Origin: Macrostomum lignano
Lineage: Eukaryota
DNA length: 64,000 nt
NCBI GenBank assembly: GCA_002269645.1
Contig: NIVC01003963.1
Location: 3,426-67,425 of the forward strand
Direction of reading: 5' to 3'
Below the pieces are notes generated by a model that worked only from the letters and a program-made list of their open reading frames with translations, was not told where the DNA came from and ran no database searches. Numbering within the stretch: the first letter of the stretch is position 1; every line of letters begins with the position of its first letter. A program made the position numbers and the translations under genes. Below are positions 8,701-64,000 of the stretch, in pieces.

Positions 8701-11700
8701 CTTCACAATCCCCAAGCTTCACAATACCCAAGCTTCACAATACCCAAGCTTCACAATCCCCAAGCTTCACAATCCCCAAACTTCACAATCCCGATGCCTA
8801 ACAATCCCAAGCTTCACAATCCCCAAGCTTCACAATACCCAAGCCTCACAATCCCCAAGCTTCACAATCCCCAAGCTTCACAATACCCAAGCTTCACAAT
8901 ACCCAAGCTTCACAATACCCAAGCCTCACAATCCCCAAGCTTCACAATCCCCAAGCCTCACAATCCCCAAGCTTCACAATACCCAAGCTTCACAATACCC
9001 AAGCCTCACAATCCCCAAGCTTCACAATCCCCAAGCTTCACTATACCCAAGCTTCACAATACCCAAGCTTCACAATCCCCAAGCTTCACAATCCCCAAAC
9101 TTCACAATCCCGATGCCTAACAATCCCAAGCTTCACAATCCCCAAGCTTCACAATCCCCAAGCTTCACAATACCCAAGCTTCACAATCCCCAAGCTTCAC
9201 AATCCCCAAGCTTCACAATCCCCAAACTTCACAATCCCGATGCCTAACAATCCCAAGCTTCACAATCCCCAAGCTTCACAATACCCAAGCCTCACAATCC
9301 CCAAGCTTCACAATCCCCAAGCTTCACAATCCCCAAGCTTCACAATACCCAAGCTTCACAATACCCAAGCCTCACAATCCCCAAGCTTCACAATCCCCAA
9401 GCCTCACAATCCCCAAGCTTCACAATCCCCAAGCTTCACAATACCCAAGCCTCACAATCCCCAAACTTCACGTTTAACAGACTCCACAATCCCCGTTACA
9501 TTACTTTAATGATGAGTTTATCATCAATATTAAACCCGCACCTGAAGTACATACATGTATCACCGGTTTGAAGAAATGGCATGGACATCAAAAATGAAAA
9601 TTTGCATTTCAGCTCCAAGAAGCGTTCATCATTTCTGGCAACAACGATTTGAAAAACTCAGAAATTGACATCGTTGGCTTCGGCAACTCCGGCGGCTCTG
9701 TGCAAGTTAACTACGTGCTGAAGATGCCCAGGAGCCCTACTCAAACTTCTCTTGAGTTCCTCAAGTTCTACATTGACTTTGGAATTCGCATCTATCAATC
9801 ATCTGGCAGTAGAAAGATAACAGTACAGGCCGATACAAAAGTGCAAGGTAATTTTCACAGGCCAATGCATTGCAGAATAGACAATGGACAGTGTATAAAT
9901 TAATATGCAAACATTTTCAGACTACTCCGGGCTCTTTACACTGCCGCCCATCCAGTCAGCAACCGAGACTGGCACTCCAGTACCCGAGACTGGTACTACG
10001 TCAACTGAGACTGGCACTCCTGCACCGGAGACTGGCACTCCAGTATCCGAGACTGGCACTCCAGTATCCGAGACTGGCACTCCAGTACCCGAGACTGGCA
10101 CTCCAGTACCCGAGACTGGCACTCCAGTACCCGAGACTGGTACTACGTCAACTGAGACTGGCACTCCTGCACCGGAGACTGGCACTCCAGTATCCGAGAC
10201 TGGCACTCCAGTACCCGAGACTGGCACTCCAGTACCCGAGACTGGCACTCCAGTACCCGAGACTGGCACTCCAGTACCCGAGACTGGCACTTCAGAACCT
10301 GAAACTGGCTCTCCGACTTCTGAGACTGGCACTCCGGCATCCCAGACTGCCACCGATCTTACAGCAGAGACACAAGAACCGACTATGCCAGCTACAGCAA
10401 TGACAAAGGTCGCAGGATCAACTCATGAAAGCAGTACACAGATGCCTGAGGCTACTGGATCAACACCTGAAGCGCCCACACCGATGCATGAGGCTACTGG
10501 TTCAACACCTGAAGCGCCCACACCGATGCATGAAGCTACTGGTTCAACACCTGAAGCGCCCACACCGATGCCTCAGGCCACTGGTTCAACACCTGAAGCG
10601 CCCACACCGATGTCTGAAGCTACTGGTTCAACACCTGAAGCACCCACACCGATGCATGAGGCTACTGGTTCAACACCTGAAGCGCCCACACCGATGCATG
10701 AAGCTACTGGTTCAACACCTGAAGCGCCCACACCGATGCCTCAGGCCACTGGTTCAACACCTGAAGCGCCCACACCGATGTCTGAAGCTACTGGTTCAAC
10801 ACCTGAAGCACCCACACCGATGCCTGAGGCTACTGGTTCAACACCTGAAGCACCCACACCGGTGACTGAGGCTACTAGTTCAACACCTGAAGCGACCTCA
10901 CCGATGCCTCAGGCTACTGGTTCAACACCTGAAGCGACCTCACCGATGCCTCAGGCTACTGAATCAATGCCTGAAGCGAGCACAATAAAGCCTGAAGTTA
11001 CTTTATCGACGCGTGAAGCGACTGGATTGTCGCCGGACCCAACTGCAACGCCGTCAGTGCCTGAGGCTTCACCAACGTCTCAAAAATCAAGAACATTAAG
11101 TGCTTCGATGACATCAGAGGCAGCGACATCAACTTCAATGATTAGTCAAAGAATGACGGAGTCAACAACAACAGCACTCCAACCTGCCACGTCTACTACC
11201 AAGTCTGCTTCGGTGCCGACCACAACCGTAACGACTTCTGCTACAACTGCGCCGGCGTTTTGCCTGCCTTCCAGTTGCAGATTTGGCGGTCGCTGCGTCA
11301 ACGGCTTTTGCAGATGCAGACCGTTCCGAGGGGGATGGCGCTGCGAAAAGAGTAAGCTCTAAGAATATATATACTGTGTATAGATATTTCTATTCGAAAA
11401 CCTAACGAAGCTGATATGATACGAACTAACTTTAAATAGTAAACGCCCTAACCAAAAATAACACTTTGCCGTCGATGGGCGAGACAAGTTAATGTTCAGA
11501 GTAGTCCTTGACAATGTACAGCCAAGCCTTCGTATACACAAACGGCTCCCTATACTGGGATGGTAAAGCTTTGCATACCTTTGAGATTTAAACTGGCAGC
11601 GATAGTCTATGGTCAGCCATGTAGCAGCGATAGTCTAAGGCCAGCCCTGTGGCAGCAATAGTCTAAGGCCAGCCCTGTGGCAGCAATAGTCTAAGGTCAG

Positions 11701-26234: not shown

Positions 26235-27955
26235 CAAGGACCACTAGAAGTTACCGTTGTATCAGGACGCAACACTCGTAAATATTGCAAAATTATTTGA
26301 AGGCCCGCTTGTTTACGTGTATTTATCGGTACTTGCCTTCAAAAAAGTATTCTACTTGACTGTTTTAAAGAAGCATGCACTATATTTGAGCCTCAGAAGC
26401 TCCATAAATAGGTGTATTTATACTTTATTTAGGCTTTAATCTGTTAAATCTAGATATTTTAAGTAATTATGTCATTATATGCAACTTTGCAACTCGATCG
26501 TTTTAAAATTTCTGAAGTTTTTATGCCCACAGCAGACATACTATATAAATTGGCGAAAGCGTGAGAAAAGGATCAGATGGGCTTCTAACTAGTTTACTAT
26601 CAACAAAAAGTAATATTTTTAGCTTATAAGCTTAGCCTTTAGCTGTATGACTAAGTTATAGCCCTATCATACTAAAACTTTAACTGCTACTAGCCTAGGC
26701 CTAACATGATAAAATTCTATTCTGTTACTGTTTTGAAATAGGCCTAGTTCACAATTAAATCTATATAGTTGATTACTTACAGTGGTTACAGGACAACATT
26801 CTAATACTTATATAGTTTAGATTGGTATAGCATAATGTAATATAGTGGATAGAATCCTTGTTAGTTTTTTGCAAGAAAGTTTTATATAGAAGTTTATAAA
26901 TTCCATATTATACAATTTCAATTAGTAATTAATTAATAAAAGTAATTAATTAATTAAATAATTAATTGAGTAATTAATTAGTAATTAATCAATCAGTAGT
27001 CCTTAAATGGCCATTAATTTTTGTTATATTATTAATTATACTGGATTAATTATATTATTTTACTAAGCTGAAGTTTTATGTTTAAAACTGAAGTCTAGGG
27101 TAAAAGAATAATGTTTTCACTATATATTAACATGACAAATAGAAAAAAAACATTTTAGCCTAGGCTAAACTTGAAGACAAATATAGCTATACATAGTAAG
27201 TATTATAGACAATATGTTTTTTGTTTATTTAGCAATATGGCTTGTAGTTTTTATAGCTTTTGTTGTTAATACAATAATATTTTGAAGCCTAAGATATTTA
27301 TTTCCTTACTTATTAAGACAGTTTTGTATAGTAGGATATATACTATTGTTAGACTTATCTTAAAGGTATTGCCCTAACTATAGGCCTAGCTTTGGCGGGA
27401 GGGAGGGAGGAGGAGAGAGGAGGGAAAGAGAAAAATAGGGGAAAGAGAAGCAAGGGGAGAGGGAAGAGATGAGAAGGAGAAAGAAGAGAGATGAGATAAG
27501 AGAGAAAGGAAAAAGTAGAGAAGAGAGTACAGATTAGAGAGCAGAGTAGAGAGAAAAGAGAAGAGAAAAAAGGAGAAAGGAGAGATGGAGAAATTAAAGG
27601 GAAGAGAAAAGAGGAGAAAGGAGAGATGGAGAAAGTAAAGGGAAGAGAAAAGAGATAAGATTGTAGAAATGAGAGAGATGAAAGAAGAGATGAGATAAAG
27701 GAGAGTGGAGAGAAAAGAGAGGGAGAGTAGAGAAGAAGGTAGAGAAGAGAAGAGAAAGGAAAGAGAGGAGTCAAAAGAGGGGAAAGAAAAGAGTACAGAG
27801 GAGAGATAGATATGAGAGAAGAAATGAGACAGGAAAGAGTAGATAGGAGAGAGAATCGAGAAGAGAGGAGAGAGGATCGAGAAGAGGGAGGAGTAGAAAG
27901 ATGATAGGAGAGATGAGAAATGAGAACAGAGACAGGAGAGGGGAGAAGAGGAAAT

Positions 27956-28038
<83 letters not shown>

Positions 28039-28980
28039 CTACCTAACCTAATCTAGTTTTTTATCAGTGCAATAGAGAGAGAATTAACTAGAAACAAATA
28101 TTTTGTCGTTCATTGCAAAGCAGATATTTATTGATCTCACATTGGTTTCATTCCAGGTGTGCCAATTCATCCAATCTAGATGTTCATCCATCAATGTCTG
28201 ATGAGCTACCATGGTGAAGTACGGTACTTATGATTCATTATGCTTTGTGATTTCAAGAGATTTTTTGGACAGAATGACTCGATTGATATGGAAGTTCAAG
28301 TTTAAAATACATACATAGGCTTACTGTTAGTTTTTTGCTTAGTTTTCTTATTTCGCATGCATTTTTATGAAATTAGAAGTTTTTATATCGAAAGTGAACT
28401 TTAATACAAATAAAGTTGGTGATACTGTACAAGTTTTATTTGACTCCTACTGTTCATTTGAACAGCAAAAGAAAGATTATGAATGTTGGAGTCCTTGTTG
28501 GGCTGGTGTGCCAAGAATTCAAAAATACTACGCCTTTCTTGATTTTGATAATACTGGTTTTTGATAGTGAAGTGTATAACGCCTTTGCAGCCTGCTCAAC
28601 TCTGTACAGATTATCTGCTTTATAAAGCTTCAAAACTGCAGGATATAAAGCATGGTCTGCTACTTTATCGAGACTAGGAGGCTATGGTTGAAAAAACAAA
28701 CTTTATATTCATTTTGACTGCAATGAAATATTGCGTATTGCCGTTACTTTACTGTACGCCCGCCGCTCCTACATGTAGATATAGCGCCAAACTTTGCATC
28801 ATGTGAAAGAGAACAAAATTTTGAGCAACCTGGCGAAAAAATTATCATTCTAGGTGCAACCAGTCCGGAGTTATGAGCATTTAAAGTTTAGCTGCAATGC
28901 AAACAAGCGGGCCTTCAAATAATTTTGCAATATTTACAAGTGTTGCGTCCTGATACAACGGTAACTTCTAGTGGTCCTTG
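26235..28980. mobile_element. Non-autonomous hAT-type DNA transposon, 2746 bp
   Basis: 80-bp TIRs (26235-26314 and 28901-28980, one mismatch, beginning CAAGG) and a perfect 8-bp TSD TAGAGAGG (26227-26234 and 28981-28988). No transposase ORF. Confidence 0.9.
27960..28036. repeat. (AG)n microsatellite ending a GA-rich tract (27395-28036)
   Basis: Direct reading. Confidence 0.95.
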
Positions 28981-33869: not shown

Positions 33870-35075
33870 TATTTCTCTGCTGCGGCAGCCAAGAGCTTGT
33901 TGCGGGTCGACCTGCACCTACAAGTACATGCTCGCTGCATCCGGCTGTTCTGCACGTACTCATTCACAGCTGCTCATCCAGAGGAGGCACGAGTGTTCTT
34001 GACCTCCTAGCTGGGCAGCTGGAGGAAGTGCCAAACCGGGACACACTGGTGGTGCTTGGAGACCTAGTTCTTTTGTCACCGGACGCGAGAACGCCAACAC
34101 GGTCACGCTGAAGTTACCTGCTAAACTGGCTAGATCTAGTGTCCACTAACACCCAGTTCCACAAGCCTTCCTCCTGCCTGGTCACTTAATTTGCGCTCTG
34201 CAAGAGGAGGCGGCAGGATGCACGTGGGCGGAACGCGGAGGGAACGCCACTCGATCGCTTACTGCGTTACTAACTGCGACACAGGGGGGGGGGCGTAGCC
34301 CAGCGGTCTAGCGCAGGCTCTGGTGTGCCAGCGACCCAGGCTCGATTCCAAGTGCAGTCACATTAATTTGGGGCTGAATTGGAATCTCGGCTTGGCTCTG
34401 CTCGTGCAATTAACGGCCTTGAGAGCCAACCCCCCAAGGTGCAGTGAAGTGTACATGCCTAACGATAAAATAAAGTTAGGGCCGCTGTACACTCCTGTGT
34501 GAGTGTGTGCCTGCGTACGTATCCGCGCGCTTGTATGCCTGCTCAGGGGAGTCGGCGGAATGGGCAGAAATGCCTCTCGCCGGTTGTGTGCCTATGTGGC
34601 TTAAAGTGCGCCAGGGTGCACACAACCCCCCTGTCTCTAATAAAAAAACTGCGACACCATGGCATCGCGCTTGGCGATCAGCGCGAGGCGTTGGGATACA
34701 CAGACATCAGCGCTGCCGTGAGAGCGGTTTATGAACAGACGGTCCCACTGATGCGATCTGCACAACGACCCTGCCTATCTGGTAGAGCGACCCCACCCTC
34801 GGGCGGACGCGTCTACCTTTGTGAATTGTGCGACTTCCTCTCGTCAGCATCGTGAACGCGCTAGAGCCGCCTATGCTCATCAACTTCTCGCTCCCGCCAG
34901 ACACGCCGCTACAAGCCAAGGAGGACTTCTGCAGCAACTTAGTTACCAAGAAGTTCCCAAGACTTCCCAAGTAGTAGCAAGCGTGTTGAACTGCGTGCTT
35001 ACTGGCACTCCCGCATCCACTGAGTGGAACACAGGGCACATTGTGACTATCCCGAAGAAGTCCGGGACAAAGCGG
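33870..35075 (+). mobile_element. Decayed RTE-like LINE remnant (endonuclease to RT-proximal region), interrupted by a SINE
   Basis: Fragments RLFCTYSFTAAHPEE...GQLEEVPNRDTLVVLGD (APE-like) and EWNTGHIVTIPKK (pre-RT motif), with stops and frameshifts. Confidence 0.6.
34283..34646 (+). mobile_element. tRNA-derived SINE, copy 1
   Basis: A box tagcccagcgg (34296-34306), B box ggctcgattcc (34339-34349), 3' aataaaaaaa, and 11-bp TSD aactgcgacac (34272-34282 and 34647-34657). Confidence 0.9.
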
Positions 35076-35272
35076 AAAGACAAGGAAATCTCACCCATGA
35101 GGGCCAACCCCAAGGCACAAGAAGTGTACATGACAGGATCAGGATCAGGATCAGGATCAGTTGTGATCGAAAAACAATGTGGTTGAAGGCGTTGCGCCAG
35201 GTTGCTTATACAGCCCTCCTGTGCATATTTATTATTTGGACGATTTTTACAGACATTTCCGTCCCAGTAGTG

Positions 35273-35484
35273 CAGGGGTCGACAAACTGCGGCCCTCGGG
35301 TCATTAGAAACTTCACAATATTAATCCGGCCAGCTCAAGGATTGTGTCTCTTCTCAGCTTCCTTCTCTATAATCTCCTCTCCCTTCTCTTTCTCTTTCTC
35401 TCTTCTTTCTCCCTTTCTCCGGCCCGCAGTCATGCGCTGGGTTCTCTATCTGGCCATTGAGGTAAAAAAAGTTAGCCGACCCTT
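35273..35484. mobile_element. CAGGGGT-ended MITE with CT-rich interior (family of 53457-54305)
   Basis: Starts caggggtcgacaaac and contains aaacttcacaatattaatccggcc, the reverse complement of the motif at ~54225-54250 and ~26185-26200. Confidence 0.6.
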
Positions 35485-35617
35485 TCCAGACTACGGTTGA
35501 AAGTTAAAAGCTCCGATCTACAACCCCAGTGTCACATTCCTTGTATTTAGCGCGGTCAGTGCGATGTACTCTTACTATTCCCTTACTAATTCCCTTACTA
35601 ATGCCAAATTGACTCAC

Positions 35618-35858
35618 CGACTGCCAGCTCTTCGTCCTCCAACTGCAGTCCCCGAGTCCACATTACGCAATAGTAGTCAGTAAGCCTCTCCGGGCAGAAC
35701 ATGCCGTCACTCTTGTAAAAACATCCGGAATTGATAGCGGCAAACTTGCTAGTGCTGTTGCGCAATCGCCTGTCCAGCTCGTCTGGTGACTCCGGCGCGT
35801 GTCCGGACTTGCTGGCCCGGAACCGGATGCGACCTCCGCCGCCGCCTCCGCGACCCAT
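35618..35858 (-). CDS. Candidate coding exon, possibly the 5' exon of the GPCR
   Basis: GC-rich ORF MGRGGGGG...CFYKSDGMFCPERLTDYYCVMW...LAV ends at a strong phase-1 donor GTCG|GTGAGT. Phase 1 is compatible with acceptors at 32423 or 31981. Confidence 0.4.
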
Positions 35859-36308
35859 CCTGATACTTGACTCTGGATGGACAATTCACTCTAAAACTAA
35901 AAACAATCCTTGAACAAAGTCTCTATCCAATGCAATAAACCAGCTGGGTTAAGCTACAGCATATATGTGTATATATAGACTTGCACGCACCGTGTGCGGG
36001 CTTTAGCTATATCCAGTTTATCGTCCCAACTCTTCCCTCCACCCCGTTTCCCATTCGATCAGCATCCCCTCTCCTTCCTCCTCTGTCTCTCAGCCCCTGT
36101 AGAGGCAGCGAATACCGAGGCTCTTCCCTGTTGGAAACGAAGGGTTTGCTATAGCAATATTTTATTCACCCAGAACCCCCGGAAAATGTGTGCGCTGCAG
36201 CTGGACAAAAAACACTATGATTTAAAAAATCCAACTGCATGAAGTTACAGAAAGCTGGGAAAAAATGTTGTTTTCATTGCAAAAGTTTTCGCTCCACATC
36301 TGCTTGTC

Positions 36309-36670
36309 TTTTATTAGAGGCAGGGGGGGGGCTGTGTGCACCCTGGCGCACTTTAAGCGACATAGGCACACAACCGGCGAGAGGCATTACTTCCCATTCC
36401 GCCGACTCCCCTGAGCAGGCATACAAGCGCGCGGATACGTACGCAGGCACACACTCACACAGGAGTGTACAGCGGCCCTAACTTTATATTATCGTTAGGC
36501 ATGTACACTTCACTGCGCCTTGGGGGTTGGCTCTCAAGGCCGTTAATTGCACGAGCAGAGCCAAGCCGAGATTCCAATTCAGCCCCAAATTAATGTGACT
36601 GCACTTGGAATCGAGCCTGGGTCGCTGGCACACCAGAGCCTGCGCTAGACCGCTGGGCTACGGCCCCCCT
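36309..36670 (-). mobile_element. tRNA-derived SINE, copy 2 (inverted relative to copy 1)
   Basis: Near-identical reverse complement of 34283-34646, with 12-bp TSD catctgcttgtc (36297-36308 and 36671-36682). Confidence 0.9.
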
Positions 36671-37244
36671 CATCTGCTTGTCTGTAAATTTAGAAAAGTA
36701 CACATGAATCGCTTCTTACTGAATTGCGGAACACAATCAATGTCTCTTTCCTGATGTTGCTTTGAATGCGCTCATTTCTGCCGTCTTAACGAAAGAACTG
36801 TACGTCCTTTACTGACATTTACAAGTGGTTTCTACTCGAAACAGAAATCGTCTGGATTACAATTTTTTCTTTATTTGCTCAGTGCATTTCTGTCAATCAG
36901 ATGTTGACCGAATCATTATCGATATAGCTAATATACGCTCGCAGATATCTCTCTTTTAATGGTTAAGTTAGCTGATTACAAGAAGTACGTTCATTATGTC
37001 GATTTTTAAAAGGCCACTAGAGTTTATCTATGTTTGAAGGAATATCGCTTGAATATACAGTAGGGTTCCTGTGACCCATTTTAACTAATTTATAATAGCG
37101 ATTTTCGGTGTTGGTTGCACCAAAAAAGGTCACATTATATATGACGTATTTACATGATATTTACATGCACGTTATGACACACATGCCACCCAATCAAAAC
37201 TTTTAAAAGCCCAAACAACTGCTGAAGTAGAAGGATGTAGGCTA

Positions 37245-37890
37245 TGCTGGATTTTCTTAGACTTGACTTATGCTTGGATTTTCTTAGAAATGGGCTGGTA
37301 AGGAACTTATGCTTGGATTTTCTTAGAAATGGGCTGGTAAGGAACTTATGCTTGGATTTTTTTAGAAATGGGCTGGTAAGGAACTTATGCTTGGATTTTC
37401 TTAGAAATGGGCTGGTCAGGAATTTATGTTTGTATTTTCTTAGAAATGGGCAGGTAAGGAACTTATGTTTGGATTTTCTTAGAAATGGGCTGGTAAGGAA
37501 CTTATGTTTGGATTTTCTTAGAAATGGGCTGGTAAGGAATTTATGTTTGGATTTTCTTAGAAATGGGCAGGTAAGGAACTTAAGCTTGGATTTTCTTAGA
37601 AATGGGCTGGTAAGGAATTTATGTCTGGATTTTCTTAGAAATGGGCAGGTAAGGAACTTATGCTTGGATTTTCTTAGAAATGGGCTGGTAAGGAACTTAT
37701 GTTTGTATTTTCTTAGAAATGGGCAGGTAAGGAACTTATGTTTGGATTTTCTTAGAAATGGGCTGGTAAGGAACTTATGTTTGGATTTTCTTAGAAATGG
37801 GCAGGTAAGGAACTTATGTTTGGATTTTCTTAGAAATGGGCAGGTAAGGAACTTATGTTTGATTTTTTTAGAAATGGGTAGGTAAGGAAC
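37245..37890. repeat. 39-bp minisatellite, ~16 copies
   Basis: ttttcttagaaatgggctggtaaggaacttatgcttgga units. Confidence 0.95.
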
Positions 37891-38859
37891 TTGTGTTTGT
37901 CGTATTACCGGCATTCAACTTATTTCTAAGAAAATTCAGTGTTTCGTCGTTCTAATGAATTTGGACATCTAGATCCTCTGCTCTGCTTTTACTGTAAGAT
38001 GTTTATATCGATGCAGTTTATTTTGGCAACACTATACAATTCTGCGGAAAAAATTCCTCGCTTGAATAACCAGAGATTATTTATGGGTCAGACTCTATCA
38101 TAGTGCCGCGATAAATTTTGCAACCATGCGGATAAACCATAATAAACAAAACGCCCATTAGTTGTATGTCCCAATTCAGCGTCAACAGCAGCATCTCATG
38201 CTCGGGTTGTCTTCTTCTCCTTCAATCTGTGGTTGGATGACAGCTATTATTTATAGTGTATGCGAATTTTAATAGCTTCAAGGTCAATCAATTGACGACC
38301 TTATTGATTGAAATCGTTCTCCAGCGCTCACAAAAGCTTCATGTAAACTTGAAACAGTCGAATTCAACAGCCCGAAAAAAAACAAAAATCGAAGTTCCGT
38401 CATGTGTGCCGTGAAGCAGCTGGCATCTGATATACTTCCGTTGTTGCTGCTACATGCATGAAGTTGCTGCTGAATGGTGAGAAACCCTAACAGTTCTGGA
38501 CACTGCAAGTCAGCCTCTACCCAGCCAGTCAGATACATCCACGGTAGCTATGCAGCACAGCACTCCGATTCTGGTATTGATCTCAGCGCGGGATCTTTCT
38601 CGATCCCAATTCTCTCAATCCCAATTGCCCTTCCCTATTCCTTGGCAAATTGATTTCCTATTTGCCTGTAGCCAAGAAGCATCAAGTGGATAGGGTTTCT
38701 TAGTTTTTTAATCGAATTATAATTACTTTGCTATATACTGTGTTCCATCGCCTGCTCACCGAGCTAACCCATGCAAGATGAAAAGCCTTGAGTATACTCC
38801 TACATATAGTTCGTATGTACACACACTGTGCACACACCACCAAGGCTGGAATGCTCAAA

Positions 38860-43841: not shown

Positions 43842-46800
43842 ATGGCCACAGCTGGTGACTCACTTAAATGGCAAGATCTTTTGGAGAAAGAGTTTGACAA
43901 AGCATTTGTTGATTTGGATGTATTACTTGGTGATGTAGATCCTGATCAATCAGATATAACTGAAGATGGACGGCAGCATTTAACAGCACTTAGTGGATCA
44001 TTTGCTCAGTTGGCTCAGAAAGCACAGACTATATTTCATTATAATGCTAAGCTGGAGGTAAGTTTGGTAATTTAAGATCTTTTTATAATCTACAAATGCT
44101 ATTATGATACTAGGCCTACTTAGCCTTATTGGAAATCTTTTAGTTTGCTATATTAAATTATTCTTGTTTTTCACACAGAGATGGTCAGAACAAGTGGAAT
44201 ATGACTAGATGAATAGGGCCTAGCAGGCACATTATAAGTGTTAGGTTATTAGATAAGTGCTAGATTAGTTAATATGCCTAATAATAAACCACCTAGTATA
44301 AGAAAAAAGTTTCTAAAAACCTTTCTTGGAAACAAGTGGCACCATAAATATTCACTGAGGTGGCTTTCAAAAATTATACCTGAAGTGCAATGCAGGGCTC
44401 TGAACTTAGCCTTGATGTAGGCCCAAGACCTTTCAATGATATCAATGTAGATTGTTAAATCATTTTAGGGTTATTCAGGTTATTAGGACCTATTGATTTC
44501 TAGTTAAGTCAGCAAATTGGCTGAAAAGTTTGAAAGAAACTAAAAAAAATTCAATGCAATTCAATAATATAATATTGTATTATTAATCAAATGTTGCTTA
44601 GCACATTAAAAGCCATGGCATTGGGAGCTAATAAAAGCCATAAGAAAGAGATTGAAGTTCTGCATAAGGTAAGGAAGCCTAGCAAGTGATGGAGGAAATG
44701 CTAAAGTGGAAGGCACATAAGCTGTCAATGGCTAGCTTGGAGGTTGCTATGACCCCTGTGAGCAAGCTGCCAAAAATCCCAAAAGAATTGACAATTTTCT
44801 AGAGTGTTGTTTAGGGTTAGGACTAAACTAGCTTGTGTTTCTACTTTGTGACTCTGTTTTTTTATGAAAATACAAGACAGCCAAAACAAGAGACAGCCAA
44901 AAACTTTTTTCAATTAAAATTTGATGGAAAGGAAAATTGGCATTTGCTCTTCTTTGTGCTTTTGTCATTTTATAGCACATAGAAAGCAAAATATTCAACT
45001 AGTGGCTTTTTTATCTAGTTGAGCATACAATATACCTGCATATAAACTTCTAGAAACTGAGGTGCAAAAATTTTCAGCAGGCACCAAAAGTTGCGCTATG
45101 TGTTGCTCCAAGCACTGATTATAATAAACAAATAGTTCAAAAATTAATAGCCAAAGACAAAAGGAAAAAGAAAAAAACATTTTGCAAAAAGACTGAACCT
45201 AAGTTGCATAGCTAATATAATTTAAACATTCTATATATAACCACTATAATCAATAGACTTCTATAACTTTTGTAAGCCAAATGAGGTTCACAATAAAGCT
45301 CATTGTTATTTTATTTTTTTTGTAAACAATTTATTATTTAAATGCTTGCTAGGCTAGATCTAAGTCCCTAGGAATTAATAGCTTATATTGGATATTAGTA
45401 TAAACAAATAAAGCTAACTCTTGTGATATATACATAGTATCATTTGAATAAAATATTTCCCAAGTGGCTTTATTCCTTACTGGTACTTGTACTATATAAT
45501 TTGTAAAATAGTAGATTTTATTAAGGTTTTTAAGGTTAGAATCATAGAACTACTTAGTATCTTAGGTCTAAATTCAAGGAAATACCAACAATTCTACCCA
45601 ATTGTTTATACTAGACTTTTAAGCCTCTTTGATACATAAAGGTTGCAGAATTTTGGAGACTCCATGTTTATAAAGACTACCTAAATTAGACATTTATAGA
45701 AAAATCCCAAGAATCCTAATAAACCAATAAATTCATTGATACTCTGAATAAAAATATGAATTTTATAAAATATGAAGCTTAACTTTTATCCAGCTTGGAA
45801 CAACAAAGTGCCAATTTGGTATCTAGGGTCTAAATTTAGGATGCCAAAATTATTTTTTATGTGTCTTGACACATGCGATAGCACAAAAAATGCATAGTGA
45901 TTGTGCATTGCTAGCAGCATTGAGGTCTCAGAGCTGCATACAAATGCCATCCAGTTTCGATATTTTTTATGGGTAAACAGTAGGAGTAAAATTCTTTTTA
46001 ATGCCTCGCCAGCTAATTAGTTCAACCTTATCATTCACTCATTTCCCTAGGCCCAATTAGTAGCCCTAAAAGCAGACCTAAGCGAGGCCACCTCAGCTAA
46101 GCAGGCACTTGAGCAGGAGTGCCAGAGTCTGCTTCTGCAGCTCCACTCTGCCCAGTTAGCTCAAGCGGCCACCACTGCCGGCTCGTCCGCTCTCCACCCG
46201 GATGCCACAGCTGGGGCTCATAAATCTGGCGAAGAGATCCGCAAACAGCTGGCCACCGACTCGGAGAGAAGGCGTCAACAGGCTCAATCTGTGCACCTGG
46301 TGGCAGCCGAGCGGGATCTCCTAACCAAAGAGAATGCCGATCTCCGCCATTACTGTCTGGCACTACAGAGCGAAGTCTATGGAGCCCGACTGGCTGCCAA
46401 GTACTTGGACAAAGAGCTGGCTGGCAGGATTCAACAGATACAATTGCTCGGCCGCAAAATGGAAGGCCCGGAGCACGACAAACTGTGGGCCCAGCTTGAG
46501 GCTGAAATTCATCTGCACAGGCACAAAACCGTGATCAGGGCTTGTCGGGGTCGGAGTCTTGGCAAGCTCACTAGGCCTAGCGGTGAGTGAACACCATGTT
46601 TTAGAATTTTGATGGTATAGATCCCTAATCCTTTGGTTTCAGGTGTGAATCACGGTTCCTCAGGTGTGAATCACGATACCTTAGGTGTGAATCCCGATTT
46701 CTCAAGTGTGAATCCCGATTCCTGAAGTGTGAATCCCGATTCCTCAGGTGTGAATCCCAATTTCACAAAAGTGAATCCCGATTCCTCAAGTGTGAATCTC

Positions 46801-49800
46801 GATTCCTCAGGTGTGAATCACGATACCTTAGGTGTGAATCCCGATTTCTTAAGTGTGAATCTCGATTCCTTAAGTGTGAATCCCTATTTCTTAAGTATGA
46901 ATCCCGATTCCTCAGGTGTGAATCCCGATTCCTCAGGTGTGAATCCCGATTCCTCAGCTGTGAATCTCGATTCCTGAAGTGTGAATCCCGATTCCTGAAG
47001 TGTGAATCCCGATTCCTGAAGTGTGAATCCCGATTCCTGAAGTGTGAATCTCGATTCCTCAAGTGTGAATCCCGATTCCTAAAGTGTGAATCAGGATTCC
47101 TGAGGTGTGAATCCCGATTCCTCATCGGTGATACCCGATTCCTGAAATGTGAATCAGGATTCCTGAGGTGTGAATCTCGATTCCTTAGGTGTGAATCCCG
47201 ATTCCTCATCGGTGATACCCGATTCCTAAAGTGTGAATCAGGATTCCTTAGGTGTGAATCCCGATTCTTCAGGGGTGATACCTGATTCCTCAACTGTAAA
47301 TCCCAGCCATTAAAATCAATTTTCTAACCTTCGTGCATACTGTTAAAAATCCATTTGTTTATCCTTAATAAAACTCATTACTTTCAATCCAGTCTCCGGT
47401 TTATTATATCTCCAGGACATAAAAATGAAAATTGTCCGCCCTGGAGAGTCAGTATTTAAAAAATACCTGCTTGAGTGAACAGGCACGTTTCTGTTTTGCG
47501 CAGGTGTACTTCTGCCATCTTGTTGCTCCGTGTATAATTATTAAATCGAGCAGGTGGCTTCATTCGTCAATAAGAAGGAAAAAGCATTCGTGAAAAAACG
47601 CCATAGTCTTTATTGTCCAGCTTTTTGAGTAATTATATTCCTAATTGCTGTTCAAGGAGGCTCTGGGAGTTTTGAGTTGACAAAATATTTCTGTCGGTTC
47701 ATACTGAACACGCAAACGTGCTAAACACGACAGAATTGCTTCTGGTTAAGTTTAAAATGCAAACTGCTTTACTGGTGCTAATAAGGCTAGTTTTATTTTA
47801 GTTGTTTCATGCTGTAAATGCCGCTCTGAAGAGGCCCTCCACTGCAGGACCATAAGAGGGGGCAGGGGCCCTCCACTGCAGGACCATGAGAGGGGCAGCG
47901 GCCCTCCACTGCAGGACCATAAGCGGGGCAGCGGCCCTCCACTGCAGGACCATAAGAGGGGCAGCGGCCCTCACTGCAGGACCATAAGAGGGGCAGCGGC
48001 CCTCCACTGCAGGACCATAAGAGGGGCAGCGGCCCTCCACTGCAGGACCATAAGAGGGGGCAGCGGCCCTCTACTGCAGGACCATGAGAGGGGCAGCGGC
48101 CCTCCACTGCAGGACCATGAGAGGGGCAGCGGCCCTCTACTGCAGGACCATGAGAGGGGCAGCGGCCCTCCACTGCAGGACCATGAGAGGGGCAGCGGCC
48201 CTCCACTGCAGGACCATAAGAGGGGCAGCGGCCCTCACTGCAGGACCATAAGAGGGGCAGCGGCCCTCCACTGCAGGACCATAAGAGGGGCAGCGGCCCT
48301 CCACTGCAGGACCATAAGAGGGGCAGCGGCCCTCCACTGCAGGACCATGAGAGGGGCAGCGGCCCTCCACTGCAGGACCATGAGAGGGGCAGCGGCCCTC
48401 CACTGCAGGACCATAAGAGGGGCAGCGGCCCTCACTGCAGGACCATAAGAGGGGCAGCGGCCCTCCACTGCAGGACCATGAGAGGGGCAGCGGCCCTCCA
48501 CTGCAGGACCATAAGAGGGGGCAGCGGCCCTCCACTGCAGGACCATAAGAGGGGCAGCGGCCCTCCACTGCAGGACCATAAGAGGGGGCAGCGGCCCTCC
48601 ACTGCAGGACCATAAGAGGGGCAGCGGCCCTCCACTGCAGGACCATAAGAGGGGCAGCGGCCCTCCACTGCAGCGTCTTTTATTCCATCCCCGAGGCCTC
48701 TCACCCTCCGTTGCTCCCACAGGCCACGACTTCAACGCTCTCCGCCGTCAGCAAGGCGTCGGCGAGCTCCGACACGTTGTAATCCGACGCGGCCCCACAG
48801 AAGGCCTGGGCATGTCGGTCACTGGCGGCAAAGAGCACGGAGTCCCTGTGCTTATCTCTGAGATACATCCGGGCCTTCCGGCCGCCCGAACCCAACGACT
48901 GTACGTTGGCGACGCCATCGTTGCCGTCAATGGCGTGTCGCTGCGCGACGTTCGCCACGCCGACGCTGTGAGGCTGCTTAGCCAGCAGGCTGGGCCGGAG
49001 GTCGCTCTGGACGTGGTCTTCGTTACGCCGGACGATGATAGCGACGAGGAGGCTGGGGAAGAGGGCAGCTTCACGGATCCAAGCACTGGCTATAGGTGAG
49101 GCTGCGGTCTATGTGCCTGTCCTTTTCATTCGTTTTTCTCTCACACTATAGTTTTTTAAGGGTTTTTCTACTCCTTTAGTGTGTTCACCTCAGGCAAGAT
49201 ATTGTAACTCTTGATATCTCCGATTGTCACTCCTCAGATCTCCTATTGTCACTCTTGAGATCTCTAATTGTCACTTCTCAGATCTCCGATTGTCACTCCC
49301 CAGATCTCTGATTGTCACTCTTAAGATCTCCGACTGTCACTTCTGAGATCTCCATTTGTCACTCCTGAGATGTCTACTTGTCACTCCTGAGATATCCGTT
49401 TGTCACTCCTGAGATCTCTAATTGTCACTCCTGAGATATCCGTTTGTCACTCTTGAGATCTCTAATTGTCACTCCTGATATATCCGTTTGTCACTCCTGA
49501 GATATTCGTTTGTCACTCTTGAGATATCTAATTGTCACTCCTGAGATATTCGTTTTTCACTCTTGAGATCTCTAATTGTCACTTCTCAGATCTCTGATTG
49601 TCACTCCTGAGATCTCCGATTGTCACCCTCGAGATCTCCGATTTTTACTCCTCAGATCTCTGATTGTCACTCTTAAGATCTCCGGTTGTCACTCCTGAGA
49701 TGTCCGTTTGTCACTCTTGAGATCTCTAATTGTCACTCCTCAGATCTCCAATCGTCACTCCTGAAATCTCTGATTGTCACCCTTGAGATCTCCGATTGAC

Positions 49801-54699: not shown

Positions 54700-55535
54700 C
54701 ACTTGTTTTAGTGATTTTGCTGGGCCATTGATTAGCTCTGCCTAAACTACATAGCCTCCAATATCTTCAGTTGCTGGGCCAGCCTCCCAGAGTGTCTGTT
54801 GCTGGGCCAGCCTCCCAGATCCTCAGTTGCTGGGCCATTGACTAGCTCTGCCTAAACAACATAGCCTCCAAGATCTTTAGTTGTTGGGCCATTGATTAGC
54901 TCTGCCTAAACAACATAGCCTCCAAGATCTTTAGTTGTTGGGCCATTGATTAGCTCTGCCTAAACAACATAGCCTCCAAGATCTTCAGTTGCTGGGCCAC
55001 CAGCCTCCCAGATCCTCAGTTGCTGGGCCACCAGCCTCCCAGATTCTCAGTTGCTGGGCCAGCCTCCCAGATCCTCAGTTGCTGGGCCACCAGCCTCCCA
55101 GATTCTCAGTTGCTGGGCCACCAGCCTCCCAGATCCTCAGTTGCTGGGCCACCAGCCTCCCAGATTCTCAGTTGCTGGGCCAGCCTCCCAGATCCTCAGT
55201 TGCTGGGCCACCAGCCTCCCAGATCCTCAGTTGCTGGGCCAGCCTCCCAGATTCTCAGTTGCTGGGCCAGCCTCCCAGATCCTCAGTTGCTGGGCCAGCC
55301 TCCCAGATCCTCAGTTGCTGGGCCAGCCTCCCAGATCCTCAGTTGCTGGGCCACCAGCCTCTCAGATCCCCAGTTGCTGGGTCAACAGCCTCCCAGATTC
55401 TCAGTTGCTGGGCCACCAGCCTCTCCAGCCTCTCCAGCCTCACCACCCAGTTGCTGGGTCAACAGCCTCCCAGATTCTCAGTTGCTGGGCCAGTCTCCCA
55501 GATCCTCAGTTGCTTAGCCAACCTCCCAGATCCCC
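54700..55535. repeat. Compound minisatellite (~54-bp units grading into ~27-31-bp units) upstream of HSF
   Basis: cagttgctgggccaccagcctcccagatcct core. Confidence 0.9.
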
Positions 55536-55605
55536 AGTCGCTGCAGCTCTAGAACACGCACCGAATCCCGATCAAAATTGCAGCCAGTCACTCTCCAGCG
55601 CTAGC

Positions 55606-57866
55606 ATGCCAGCAGTGGTGGGATCCGAGCAGCTGCCTGAGTCCCAGCCAGGCCAACAGCCCGCCGCAGGTGCCTCTCCAAATCTTCGGCGCGGACTGCC
55701 CGGCGGCCTGCCCGGCTTCCTGGTGAAGCTATGGACTCTGGTCAACGATCCCACTATCGATTCGATAATCAGCTGGGACTCAACCGGCGATTGCATCCTC
55801 ATCTCGGATGGCAACGCTCTCGCGGCCGAGGTTCTGCCATTGTACTTTAAGCACAACAACTTGGCCAGCTTCACGCGCCAGTTGAACATGTACGGCTTTC
55901 ACAAGCTGGCATCCGCCGATAGCAGCGGTCAGATGCACTTTCAGCATCCGTACTTTCGGCAGGGACAGCCGGAGCTGTTGCCAAGCGTCAACCGTCAGAT
56001 GCTTGGAGGCGGCGGCCGGTACAGCCTGGCTCTGACTACTAGGCATGGCGGTACTGCGGCAACTACAGGCGACGCTATGGATCCGCAGCAGCAGCCATCG
56101 GTGTCAGGGGGCACCGCACCGTGTGAGGGCACCTCTGACGGAGTCGACCCGGTGTCGCTTAACGGTCGCGACGCTGTGCAGGCCGCGCTGACCGAGATGC
56201 GCACGCGGCAGTCGGCTACTGACCAACAGTTGAGGCGGCTGTGCGATGAGAATCATAAACTGTGGCTGGAATTGGATAACCTGCGGGTGCAGCACCAGCA
56301 GCAGCAGGTGAGGCTGGGTGTCTAACACAGAACAGGCTGTCTAACACACAGAACAGGCTGTCTAACACACATAACAGACTGTCTAACACCCAGAACAGGC
56401 TGTCTTAACACACAGAACAGGCCATGTCTGACACACAGAACAGGCTGTCTAACACACATCCGGCTGTCTAACACACAGAACAGGCTGTCTAACACACAGA
56501 ACAGGCCATGTCTGACACACAGAACAGGCTGTCTAACACACATCCGGCTGTCTAACACACAGAACAGGCCATGTCTGACACACAGAAAAGGCTGTCTAAC
56601 ACACAGAACAGGCTGTCTAACACACAGAACAGGCTGTCTAACACACATCCGGCTGTCTAACACACAGAACAGGCCATGTCTGACACACAGAAAAGGCTGT
56701 CTAACACACAGAACAGGCTGTCTAACACACAGAACAGGCTGTCTAACACACAGAACAGGCCATGTCTGACACACAGAACAGGCTGTCTAACACATATCCA
56801 GCTGTCTAACACACAGAACAGGCTGTCTAACACACAGAACAGGCTGTCTAACACACAGAACAGGCCATGTCTGACACACAGAACAGGCTGTCTAACACAT
56901 ATCCAGCTGTCTAACACACAGAACAGGCTGTCTAACACACAGAACAGGCCATGTCTAACACACAGAACAGGCCATGTCTAACACACAGAACAGGCCATGT
57001 CTAACACACAGAACAGTCCGTCTAACACTTAGAACAGGCTGTCTAGCAACTGAAAATAGATAAAATTTTTGTACAAACTGATGACAGACTATTATATAAA
57101 GTTAACCTGTCCATGAAACCCACCATCACTGCAGGTGGCTGTCACCTGGCTCCTGGACTTCATCAAAGCCGCCATGGTGAATCGAAGCGCCAATCAAGGC
57201 GTCAGCGGCGGCGGCATCCGGGGGCCTCGAATAAGCGAGCCCGACCTGCAGTCTGCTGCTGACAGCTCCGCCGCTGCCGCCGCCGCCGCCTCCTCGATGG
57301 GGCCGCTGGGCGCTGCCACCTCTAGCGGCTCTGTACCGTCCGACACTTCCGGTTTCAACCGGAAGCGGCCATATCCGTTCCCCTACCCGCAGCAGCAGCA
57401 GCAGCTGATGGCTATCGAGATGCCGCCTGCGGCGCCAGCCATCGAGGCTCCCCGTCAGCGTCGGGCCATCACGCAGCTGCCGCCAACGCCGACTACCCCG
57501 CAGCCGCCGCCGCCGCTGACGCCGACAGCCGTGTCGACCTCCGCCGAGTCTCCCAGCATCGCCGACTTCTGCCCGGAGGCATTCAGCGCAGATATCAATT
57601 CCCGACAAGCCGACTTGGACGGCATTGTGAATGCTTTGGAGACGGACGAATCGTTGGACTTCGATGTTGACAGGCTGTTGGCTGAGCTGGTGCAGTCGCC
57701 GCCGACTCCACAGCAGCAGCAGCCGCAGCAACCGCCGGCTTCTGTGCCAGCGGCGGTGACCGGTTTAACCAAACAGCAACCGCCTGGTTCAAATAACTCT
57801 GAAGACGCTGAGCCGCCACTACTGGACAGCTGTTTGATTGAGGATCCGGGACAATTGTTTAAATAA
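55606..57866 (+). CDS. Heat shock transcription factor family protein, ~477 aa
   Basis: Exon to 56307 has the HSF DNA-binding domain (FLVKLWTLV...FKHNNLASFTRQLNMYGFHK...FQHPYF) and HR-A/B heptads; a phase-0 intron leads to exon 57135-57866. An acceptor at 55546 implies an upstream exon, so the start codon is uncertain. Confidence 0.9.
56320..57050. repeat. 21-bp minisatellite filling the HSF intron
   Basis: tctaacacacagaacaggctg units. Confidence 0.95.
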
Positions 57867-61003: not shown

Positions 61004-62888
61004 TCAAGCTAGCCAATCATTGAAATCCGCTCCCAGCTTGAGGTCCGGCACAATCCGTCTCAGGTCTACCAGATTAGTGCGGTACTCCTGTCGCTTGGGC
61101 CCGTTGTAGTCCCAAACTGGTCCGCTCTTGCGCACATCGTGAACGGCAAATACTGGCTGGGACGAGTCCGTGATTGGATTTAAATTCGTCACGTCTGAGC
61201 ACAGGTTAGTGAGATTCTTCACCCGGCGCAGACGGCGCACTTTTGGCTCGGAGCCTGTGGCGATCCTCTTGCAGGCGCTTTCCAAACTGGACGTCCGGAA
61301 TTTCCTGAAATCAGCTGAACTGCTGTTCAGGGTGTTGTTCAAATACGGATAGAAACTGAACGACGGTGGCAGGTAGACGGTTGACATGGAATTGTTAGTC
61401 AGCGGTGTTCGATTTGAGTATTTCTCAATTATTCTTGTGAGTCCGAACGGTCCCGCAAAACCGAGAATGTCGAACTTTGGATCCACCATGGCCAGCTGCT
61501 CAAGTGCAAACCGGAAGAAGCCGTGATTCGGTGCCGACATGAGGAATGCCGGGTTCGCCAGCGGCTTGACTGGCCAGTTCAGGCCGAGAAACGTCAGCGA
61601 GTGCGCCTCCGGCTCTCGAGTCACCACCGCAGGGAAGCGGCGAACTTCGTCCAGACTCTGGACCAGACTGTAGTCCAGGTCGGCGTACGTGCCTCCGAAC
61701 TGTTGAGGTGTTCCAGTGTTGGCTTTTTGTTGCTCAGTTTCTTAAGCAAGAACCAAGTCGCCAGCCCTTGAGACCGTCAGGATATTCAACGATTCTGCCA
61801 GAAGGTCGGATTTCATCAGCACGTCGATCCACGTGTCTGCATCAGCTTTGATTTCGTTGGTTACTGGTCTTCATCTAGACGGAGCTTCTGGACCTTCAAC
61901 AGGTGGCATCAGGTGACTATGGACACCTTGCTGCAAATGTCTCTGATGTCTCTGATCAAGAATCAACAGTGGGCCAGCCTCAACTGCTGCGTATCCTCAA
62001 TCAGTATCTCTGCCTAGTGCCGTAGAAGAAGGCGACGGCGTCGGGATGATGACGGAATGCTTGAGATACAGTTGAGGCTTCCCCACTGTTGATTCTTGAT
62101 CAGAGACACCATGTAGAGACATTCGCTACAGGGTGTTCATAGTCACCTGATGCCACCTGTTGAAGGTCCAGAAGCTCCGTCTAGGTGAAGGCCAGTAACT
62201 AACGAAATCAGAGCTGATGCAGACACATGTGATCGACGTGCTGATTAAATCCAACCTGCTGGCAAAATCGTTGAATAACCTGACGGTCTCAAGGGCTGGC
62301 GAATTGGTTCTTGTTTAACAGCAATTTAGTTGTCGATGATTTTGTGTGGCACAGCAAACAGACACCAACCTTGAGCAGTAGCATGTAGCGAATATAGTCA
62401 ACCCGTTGGATTTGCAGTTTCAAAGATTTGAACTGCTTCAGCACTGCCGGGAAATTCGCGGCCACAAACGGCTCCAGATCCTGGTCGCGCCAGAGCACGT
62501 AGGTCCAGTCAGGGTGAATTCTGTGCCAGGTTCTCAGCTGCTCAGCGAAATACGCCGAAACGGATTCATTGCGCCACAGGATGTGTCGAATCTTCGGTAT
62601 CGGAAATGCGTATCTTCTGTGCAGATGCTCTACGTACTCGCGCCTGCAGATCTGGTTTGTGCAGACAGTTGGCAGCAGAATTCTCGTCGTGAAATTCACA
62701 TTCTGACTCGCCAGCGCAGTCTGGCTGCTATCAACCGTGCTGAACAATGCCGCGATGAGTAGCCTGTCCCTGGCTGGCTTGTCCAGCAGCGCGACCAGCT
62801 GCGCGACAAATGCGTAACCCAGCAGCAGACCGAAGGTGACGGCCGCTACAGAGCGCCACTTGGAGCAGAGTTTTGCACACGGCTGCAT
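61004..62888 (-). CDS. Type II membrane DxD glycosyltransferase, GT32/Gly_transf_sug-like, ~404 aa
   Basis: Exon 62888-62370 (N-terminal TM, IPKIRHILW, WHRIHPDWTYVLW, RVDYIRYMLL) joins in phase 0 to exon 61699-61004 (FGGTYADLDY, GFAGPFGLT). Confidence 0.85.
61742..62318. other. Long intronic inverted repeat (foldback), arms ~258 bp, loop ~60 nt
   Basis: 61742-62000 is the reverse complement of 62061-62318 with scattered substitutions and small indels; TTAA at both outer ends. Confidence 0.95.
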
Positions 62889-63479: not shown

Positions 63480-63770
63480 ATGACAACTGTGACAGCAACA
63501 GGCTGCTCGAATAAGACCAACTGCAGCAGGAGTGCCAGCGCGTTGACTGCCCAACGAGACGGATGTGATGAGCTGTGACGATGGACGACAGCCTGCAGGG
63601 CCTGCTGCTCAGGACGAGGTCGGCTCTGCTGCGACTGCGGGATTGCCAAGGCAATGCTGAAATGATGACGAATGCGGACAGATCGATCTGGAAGCGGCAC
63701 TGGCTGAGGTTAACACCTGGCTGCAAGCTGTCGAACTGCAGCTTGATGCTGATCGCTATGATGATGAGGT
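63480..63770 (+). pseudogene. Possible frameshifted coding exon with helical, spectrin-repeat-like character
   Basis: DDSLQGLLLRTRSALLRL then a 1-nt shift to DECGQIDLEAALAEVNTWLQAVELQLDADRYDDE, ending at the donor GAG|GTGAGC and followed by a GA-rich repeat to the window end. Confidence 0.3.
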
Positions 63771-64000
63771 GAGCTGGAGTTGTCTGGAGGCCGAGCAGAA
63801 GAGAGGGAGGGAGCGGATTAGAGGAAGGAGAGCGGATAAGAGACGGGAGGTAGCGGATAAGGAGAGAGGGAAGCGGATAAGAGAGTGGAGGGAGCGGATT
63901 AAGAGAGGGAGGGAGCGGATAAGAGAGGGGAGGCAGCGATTAGAGAGGGAGCCAGCGGATTAGAGAAGGGAGGCAGCAGATAGAGAGGGAGGGAGCGGAT

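Follow-up and report, generated by a model that had tools for sequence, protein, structure and literature searches.

A long foldback in the single intron of a GT32 glycosyltransferase gene of the flatworm Macrostomum lignano is probably a decaying, non-autonomous member of a dispersed repeat family

Whether a long hairpin inside an intron is a dedicated source of small RNAs or the remains of a mobile element is the question raised by a GT32 glycosyltransferase gene of the flatworm Macrostomum lignano. The gene lies on the minus strand of a 64,000-nt stretch of contig NIVC01003963.1 (positions 3,426 to 67,425, GenBank assembly GCA_002269645.1), referred to here as the window, in whose numbering all coordinates are given unless another sequence is named, and two long inverted arms and a spacer, which together form a foldback, occupy most of its only intron. 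A sequence-only reading of this DNA had proposed either a hairpin RNA (hpRNA) locus or a foldback element that inserts at TTAA. The foldback is probably an old, decaying, non-autonomous element of the MITE kind (miniature inverted-repeat transposable element), which would have transposed into a short intron and would now be a passenger in it; its origin by transposition, its target site and its neutrality are what we infer from the sequence. The parts of the gene and of the foldback are listed below, with a slash at each exon–intron boundary.

61004–61699, minus strand: exon 2 of the GT32 gene, which begins CAACAG/TTC GGA GGC and extends from the DXD motif region to the stop codon
61700–62369, minus strand: GT..AG intron hosting the foldback, exactly 670 nt
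61742–61986, no strand: left foldback arm, 245 nt, with 90% complementarity to its partner on the right
61742–61745, no strand: outer TTAA on the left, either a candidate target-site duplication or the last bases of the inverted repeat
61987–62068, no strand: spacer (loop), 82 nt, asymmetric, part of the repeat family
62069–62318, no strand: right arm of the foldback, 250 nt, inverted partner of the left arm
62315–62318, no strand: outer TTAA on the right, either a candidate target-site duplication or the last bases of the inverted repeat
62370–62888, minus strand: exon 1 of the GT32 gene, with its ATG at 62888 and its end at ...CTG CTC AAG/GTTGGT

The repeat search recovered the inverted repeat as three collinear blocks (61742–61829/62231–62318, 61830–61944/62115–62229, and 61944–61986/62069–62111), each with a complementarity of 91–93%. 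In a global alignment, the left arm and the reverse complement of the right arm are identical in 225 of 250 columns (90%), and they differ by 20 mismatches (13 transitions and 7 transversions) as well as a 1-nt and a 4-nt indel. The whole foldback measures 577 bp, 86% of it inverted repeat, and takes up 577 of the 670 nt of the intron, beginning 51 nt past the donor and stopping 42 nt short of the acceptor. The intron RNA of the gene strand folds at −464 kcal/mol, compared with −199 ± 5.6 kcal/mol in dinucleotide shuffles (z = −47), and that of the opposite strand at −480 kcal/mol (z = −43). Thus, the intronic hairpin of the GT32 gene is confirmed as real. The sequence-only reading had already placed a foldback in this 670-nt intron, about 50 nt from the donor and about 40 nt from the acceptor and with TTAA at both outer ends, all of which was borne out, and the fold that it had suggested as a check is far more stable than the shuffled controls. 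Its figure of ~258 bp for the arms was slightly too large (245 and 250 nt).

A symmetry of this kind could also be created by a chimeric or palindromic long read. Nothing specific points to such an assembly artefact, beyond the M. lignano genome being hard to assemble (PMC5730564), and it seems very unlikely because the arms are divergent (10%, including indels), the spacer is asymmetric, and the flanking exons are collinear, correctly phased and placed at a conserved intron position. Moreover, the family to which the foldback belongs is present elsewhere, in independent assemblies and annotations.

Splicing of the two exons gives a product of 404 amino acids with an intact reading frame, in which PF04488 (Gly_transf_sug, DXD) is matched with E = 2e-14 (54.5 bits, with a cut-off of 23), and the YADLDY motif opens exon 2. 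The nearest proteins are all from M. lignano and share 49–56% identity over most of the query, being paralogs and not products of the gene itself, and no exact match was found in the protein collection with the spliced protein, the exon-1 open reading frame (ORF) read through into the intron, or eight alternative-start exon ORFs. Judged from these comparisons, the GT32 copy of the window is a divergent paralog; its exon 2 is 62% identical to that of the paralog on contig L004, one of the four contigs (L001–L004) from which seven M. lignano GT32 genes were sampled. An intron of 670 nt is unremarkable in this genome. Transcripts that overlap the repeat annotation were excluded from the M. lignano GenBank annotation (PMC5730564).

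Within the 64 kb of the window, no further copy of the arm was found by blastn (word size 7) or nhmmer, in agreement with the sequence-only reading. Beyond it, arm- or spacer-like sequence is present at no fewer than nine other M. lignano loci (at least nine: one DNA copy on contig L002 and eight unrelated gene models), and the foldback belongs to a multi-copy, dispersed repeat family of this species. The DNA copy (L002 8600–8900) is a single-arm homolog, 86% identical in a block of 50 nt and 78% in one of 68 nt, which nhmmer detects at E = 8e-56 from a three-sequence profile that itself includes this copy; it is located in AT-rich intergenic DNA and is interrupted by additional internal sequence, and a search of L002 7500–10500 found no inverted partner for it. 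The three-frame translation of the whole element matches the M. lignano models of PKC (A0A1I8IUA2) and Headcase (A0A1I8IDV2), while an exhaustive phmmer search with an 80-aa open frame that runs through the inner left arm into the spacer gave seven credible M. lignano models with E values from 3e-16 to 7e-4: A0A1I8HVP0, the same PKC, UPI0007A19C87, Mpv17 A0A1I8IVC1, A0A1I8FJI1, the kinase A0A1I8HP62, and the cation-efflux protein A0A1I8I7C2. Both translated searches together yield eight models, with E values from 3e-16 to 4e-3, an 'Ovule protein' and an uncharacterised protein also being among them, and the genes that host the repeat pieces are mutually unrelated. P0019 and P0020, two hits of the representative protein search, were taken as spurious, being low-identity tandem-repeat proteins. 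Several of the pieces inside the eight models are read in shifted frames, and both orientations occur. These eight models are probably in part mis-annotated or chimeric, the repeat apparently having been absorbed by gene prediction.

The family copies also reveal how the repeat is organized. By tblastn, the spacer readings CRRRR..DDDGMLE and, on the opposite strand, SQAFRHHPDAV recur in the copies P0015, P0018 and P0022, in which a unit of ~150 nt (element nt ~151–300, comprising the inner arm and the spacer) is tandemly repeated. In P0022, which is the cation-efflux model A0A1I8I7C2, residues 781–830 correspond to foldback nt 151–300, arm followed by spacer, and residues 907–958 correspond in the same direction to nt 286–427, spacer followed by inverted arm. 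Because P0022 has this order of arm, spacer and inverted arm, the hairpin arrangement is a family trait, and so is the spacer within it. Of the 'TTAA-inserting foldback element' proposed from the sequence alone, the foldback element is thereby upheld, with at least nine other loci and the same order in P0022; insertion at TTAA is compatible with the data but unproven, as discussed below.

The same order bears on whether the foldback was ever mobile as a unit. It could have formed in situ, either by local inverted duplication of a solo copy, through template switching or foldback repair, or by two head-to-head insertions, and would then never have transposed as a foldback. The solo arm on L002, the sole other copy at the DNA level, would fit this possibility, as would the 10% divergence between the arms and the asymmetric spacer. 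Nevertheless, the homologous spacer within the arm–spacer–inverted arm order of P0022 stands against it, and so does the fact that the outer and inner ends of both arms fall at the same positions of the family. Moreover, states specific to one arm are common to other copies: P0011 has GATC-CACGTG, as does the left arm (reading HVDPRVC), P0012 and P0017 have GATCACATGTG, as does the right arm (reading HVDHMCLHQ, with an additional nucleotide and an adjacent C>T), and the D/N codon at ATGGAC/ATGAAC varies among copies as well as between the arms. Since these differences are common to other copies, part of the 10% divergence predates the insertion, and, as the comparison suggests, it was probably inherited from a source element that was already asymmetric. 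Other changes are private to the left arm, such as two C>T substitutions that turn the consensus PSPRRSFW, kept by the right arm, into SSSRRSFW. An origin in situ is thus quite improbable.

A second alternative accepts the hairpin as it stands and gives it a function. A functional hpRNA locus, which would be a source of endogenous small interfering RNAs (siRNAs), would have its hairpin diced to siRNAs of 21–23 nt that regulate related transcripts, whether as a dedicated locus or as a recruited transposon copy. The imperfect duplex of ~245 bp would be transcribed with the host pre-mRNA, as its intronic position in an intact gene implies, and the related sequence within other gene models would provide targets in principle. 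M. lignano possesses Dicer, Drosha, AGO and PIWI genes (PMC4604429). Nevertheless, the locus is not unique, and its arms match a dispersed non-coding repeat at 75–88%, which is too low for siRNA targeting, while the gene models that carry the repeat resemble read-through mis-annotations. Furthermore, no protein-coding parent of the arms was found, since a Pfam search of all arm frames at E ≤ 10 returned only noise and no protein family. The six reading frames of the foldback are all interrupted or without a Pfam match, Rfam has no match on 61500–62600 at E ≤ 1, and the best-conserved 26-mer of the arm had no matches in a metagenome scan. A coding origin of the arms was rejected, given that substitutions between copies are not concentrated at synonymous sites and the frames are broken.

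The transcribed strand shows neither a G:U bias nor better folding, as might be expected of a preserved RNA stem. The 13 transition mismatches produce six G:U pairs in the transcribed (minus-strand) RNA and seven in the antisense RNA, and the antisense fold is even slightly more stable than that of the gene strand (−480 vs −464 kcal/mol). This symmetry between strands points to the neutral decay of a DNA palindrome and not to the preservation of a stem in the sense RNA. In addition, the paper on M. lignano small RNAs describes no hpRNA loci (PMC4604429). A functional hpRNA locus is therefore unlikely, and the 'hpRNA locus' of the sequence-only reading finds no support at a locus that is not unique, whose arms match a non-coding repeat and whose pairing is not preserved in a strand-specific manner. 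That reading had itself regarded many genomic copies with the same termini and no small RNAs or editing as an argument against a unique hpRNA, and the copy-number part of this argument is borne out by at least ten loci. In a variant of the idea, also considered improbable, transposon-derived siRNAs from the excised intron would act in trans on copies of the family, including those within unrelated transcripts; if true, this would represent hairpin-based control of transposons and genes by AGO-clade proteins in a flatworm, alongside the PIWI-interacting RNA system.

The same intron was also compared in the GT32 paralogs. In all seven sampled paralogs, the position after residue 173 (LLK followed by FGG, LGG or YGG) and the phase of the intron are identical to those in the window, the introns measuring about 385, 395, 1090, 1880, 2100, 2380 and 2900 nt, and none of the seven gives a usable alignment with the flanks of the window intron. 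One of them (L003 16775–19155) holds a different foldback of 700 bp at L003 17563–18262, with 260-nt arms that are 99% complementary, a 180-nt spacer, the termini CAAGGACGAC and a perfect 8-bp target duplication (GTGTAATC), which shares no sequence with the foldback of the window. The comparison of paralogous introns that the sequence-only reading had recommended thus finds a conserved position and phase, sequences that do not align, and an unrelated foldback in one case. Foldbacks are present in two of the eight sampled introns at the residue-173 position, which is a marginal enrichment (hand-calculated Poisson p of about 0.04).

Foldbacks are not restricted to these introns. A census of ~156 kb, made up of the 64-kb window and 92 kb of loci, found four foldbacks whose arms reach 200 nt or more: that of the window, L001 954–1543, L003 5913–7719 and L003 17563–18262. 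The second and third are young and are placed just upstream of GT32 paralogs, L001 954–1543 having 221-nt arms at 99% identity and L003 5913–7719 having 517-nt arms at 100% and a possible TA duplication. Because four foldbacks and two elements with terminal inverted repeats (TIRs), described at the end, occur in ~156 kb, a long hairpin is an ordinary feature of the M. lignano genome. The GT32 genes themselves form tandem arrays, with two copies in L001 (1969–3508 and 10001–11547) and three in L003 (10187–24819).

In a scan for target duplications at all symmetric boundary offsets, with lengths from 2 to 10, TTAA (4 bp) and TA (2 bp) were the only candidates to fit as flanking direct repeats, of which TTAA requires no mutation; the scan detected no direct repeat of 5–10 bp around the foldback. 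The termini would then be TTAA followed by GCAAGAACC on the left and GGTTCTTGT followed by TTAA on the right (GCAAG... and ...CTTGT). Elements of the piggyBac superfamily typically have 5'-CCC...GGG-3' termini beside TTAA. The foldback ends lack CCC and GGG and do not qualify as piggyBac-type termini. The motif CAAGAACC, located 5 nt inside the foldback end, resembles the termini CAAGGACC and CAAGGACG of two elements with 8-bp duplications (26235–28980 in the window and L003 17563–18262). A duplication of 8 bp, as in hAT elements, was nevertheless rejected, since a TIR starting at CAAGAACC would have the flanks TTCTTAAG and TTTAACAG, which match at only 4 of 8 positions; the 9-bp target duplication of the Foldback (FB) type was likewise rejected by the symmetric scan.

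For the favoured explanation, that of a MITE-like element, the following course of events can be proposed. This GT32 paralog would originally have had an intron of ~97 nt, into which the foldback, mobilised in trans, would have inserted at TTAA (or TA). If TTAA is the duplication, the pre-insertion intron would have measured 51 + 4 + 42 = 97 nt and would read ...AAATTGCTG-TTAA-GAAACTGAG..., and the insertion would have enlarged it to 670 nt, the element being a passenger since. The pre-mRNA would form an imperfect duplex of ~245 bp, so that about 93 single-stranded nt would separate the 5' splice site from the branch/acceptor region, a geometry that would be compatible with the normal splicing of the GT32 gene. 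Because M. lignano has the Dicer, Drosha, AGO and PIWI genes mentioned above, the excised intron is a plausible Dicer substrate and could be diced into siRNAs as a by-product.

Several points weigh against this explanation. The palindromic TTAA may be no more than the outermost part of the inverted repeat. The family counts at least ten loci, most of them seen through gene-model translations, and the only second copy at the DNA level is the solo arm on L002, transposition, target duplication and shared termini all being putative. The similarity of the L002 copy ends about 20 nt short of the foldback terminus; P0012 alone follows the arm further, as far as about nt 5, past which its sequence is unrelated. 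No transposase partner of the foldback was found. Finally, the foldback may have acquired a function.

How the foldback compares with known systems depends on which of its features is considered. MITEs with an almost complete hairpin structure are known, including the TTAA-specific MITEs of mosquitoes and vertebrates. Like them, the foldback of the window is small (577 bp), non-coding, multi-copy, dispersed and intronic, with terminal inverted repeats and TTAA at both ends; unlike them, it has inverted repeats that are not short but about 245 nt long (86% of the element), and about 10 loci of it are documented. Its very long arms, together with the tandem ~150-nt units of P0015, P0018 and P0022, recall the Drosophila FB and Galileo-type elements, from which it differs in having a single unit and no target duplication of 7–9 bp, and no sequence similarity or associated transposase connects it with them. 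With the Drosophila hpRNA loci (hpRNA1, hp-CG4068 and the Nmy/Tmy type), it has in common a long, imperfect inverted repeat, presumably transcribed by RNA polymerase II here as it is there, that could feed Dicer. Those loci are unique, their arms being derived from, and targeting, specific genes, whereas the foldback belongs to a dispersed non-coding repeat, has no identified target and shows no conservation peculiar to one strand. The hAT-like elements of M. lignano itself (26235–28980 in the window and L003 17563–18262) share with it the genome and the size class, the latter even being inserted in the same intron of a paralog; however, they have perfect 8-bp duplications and 99% arms, whereas the flanks of the foldback match at 4 of 8 positions, and no sequence similarity exists between them and the foldback beyond the resemblance of the termini.

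The foldback represents a previously undescribed repeat family, in which the number of internal ~150-nt units varies and pieces of which are contained in at least eight M. lignano gene models in UniProt; no account of MITE, foldback or hpRNA loci was found in the literature consulted on Macrostomum. Where repeats and foldbacks are as plentiful as in the M. lignano genome, a striking intronic hairpin is the expected footprint of a MITE-like element and should not be taken as evidence of a regulatory RNA gene. The GT32 intron also offers a concrete locus for following the fate of long intronic double-stranded RNA, such as its dicing and its tolerance by the spliceosome, in a flatworm in which RNA interference and transgenesis work.

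The window contains two further elements with inverted ends. The first (26235–28980) is 2.7 kb long and has 80-nt TIRs (99%) starting CAAGGACCAC, a perfect 8-bp direct repeat (TAGAGAGG) at its flanks, and an interior with a strong GC skew that may be tandem-repetitive; it has the appearance of a young non-autonomous transposon of hAT-like type. The second spans 34280–36676, with inverted arms of ~350 nt (34280–34631 and 36326–36676, 97%) that are 1.7 kb apart and no clear target duplication seen. Its arm recurs at three sites of L002 (16406–16593, 19000–19074 and 21312–21468) with 83–97% identity, and the portion at 34492–34648 is 97% identical to M. lignano contig NIVC01000895.

Other parts of the window are occupied by long ORFs made of short tandem repeats, which may be genes or satellites of coding appearance (6270–7949, 8287–9120, 9905–11362, 37150–37914, 46763–47293 and 48137–48646), for instance mucin-like (E/Q)ATGSTPEAPTPMP units, among which no Pfam family was matched except for weak zf-nanos and CCCH zinc-finger matches at 37150–37914. 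A heat-shock-factor gene is located at 55051–57866 on the plus strand. Its HSF-type ORF (55051–56325; PF00447, E = 1e-29) is identical to M. lignano A0A1I8F6U.. at 183 of 184 aligned residues, the remaining differences being gaps in the gene model, and, before its first ATG, it contains a repeat of ...PPRSSVAGPPASQILSCWA... units. Finally, a tandem array of ~30-nt GGAGCGGATAAGAGAG-like units fills 63770–64000 and continues past the end of the window.

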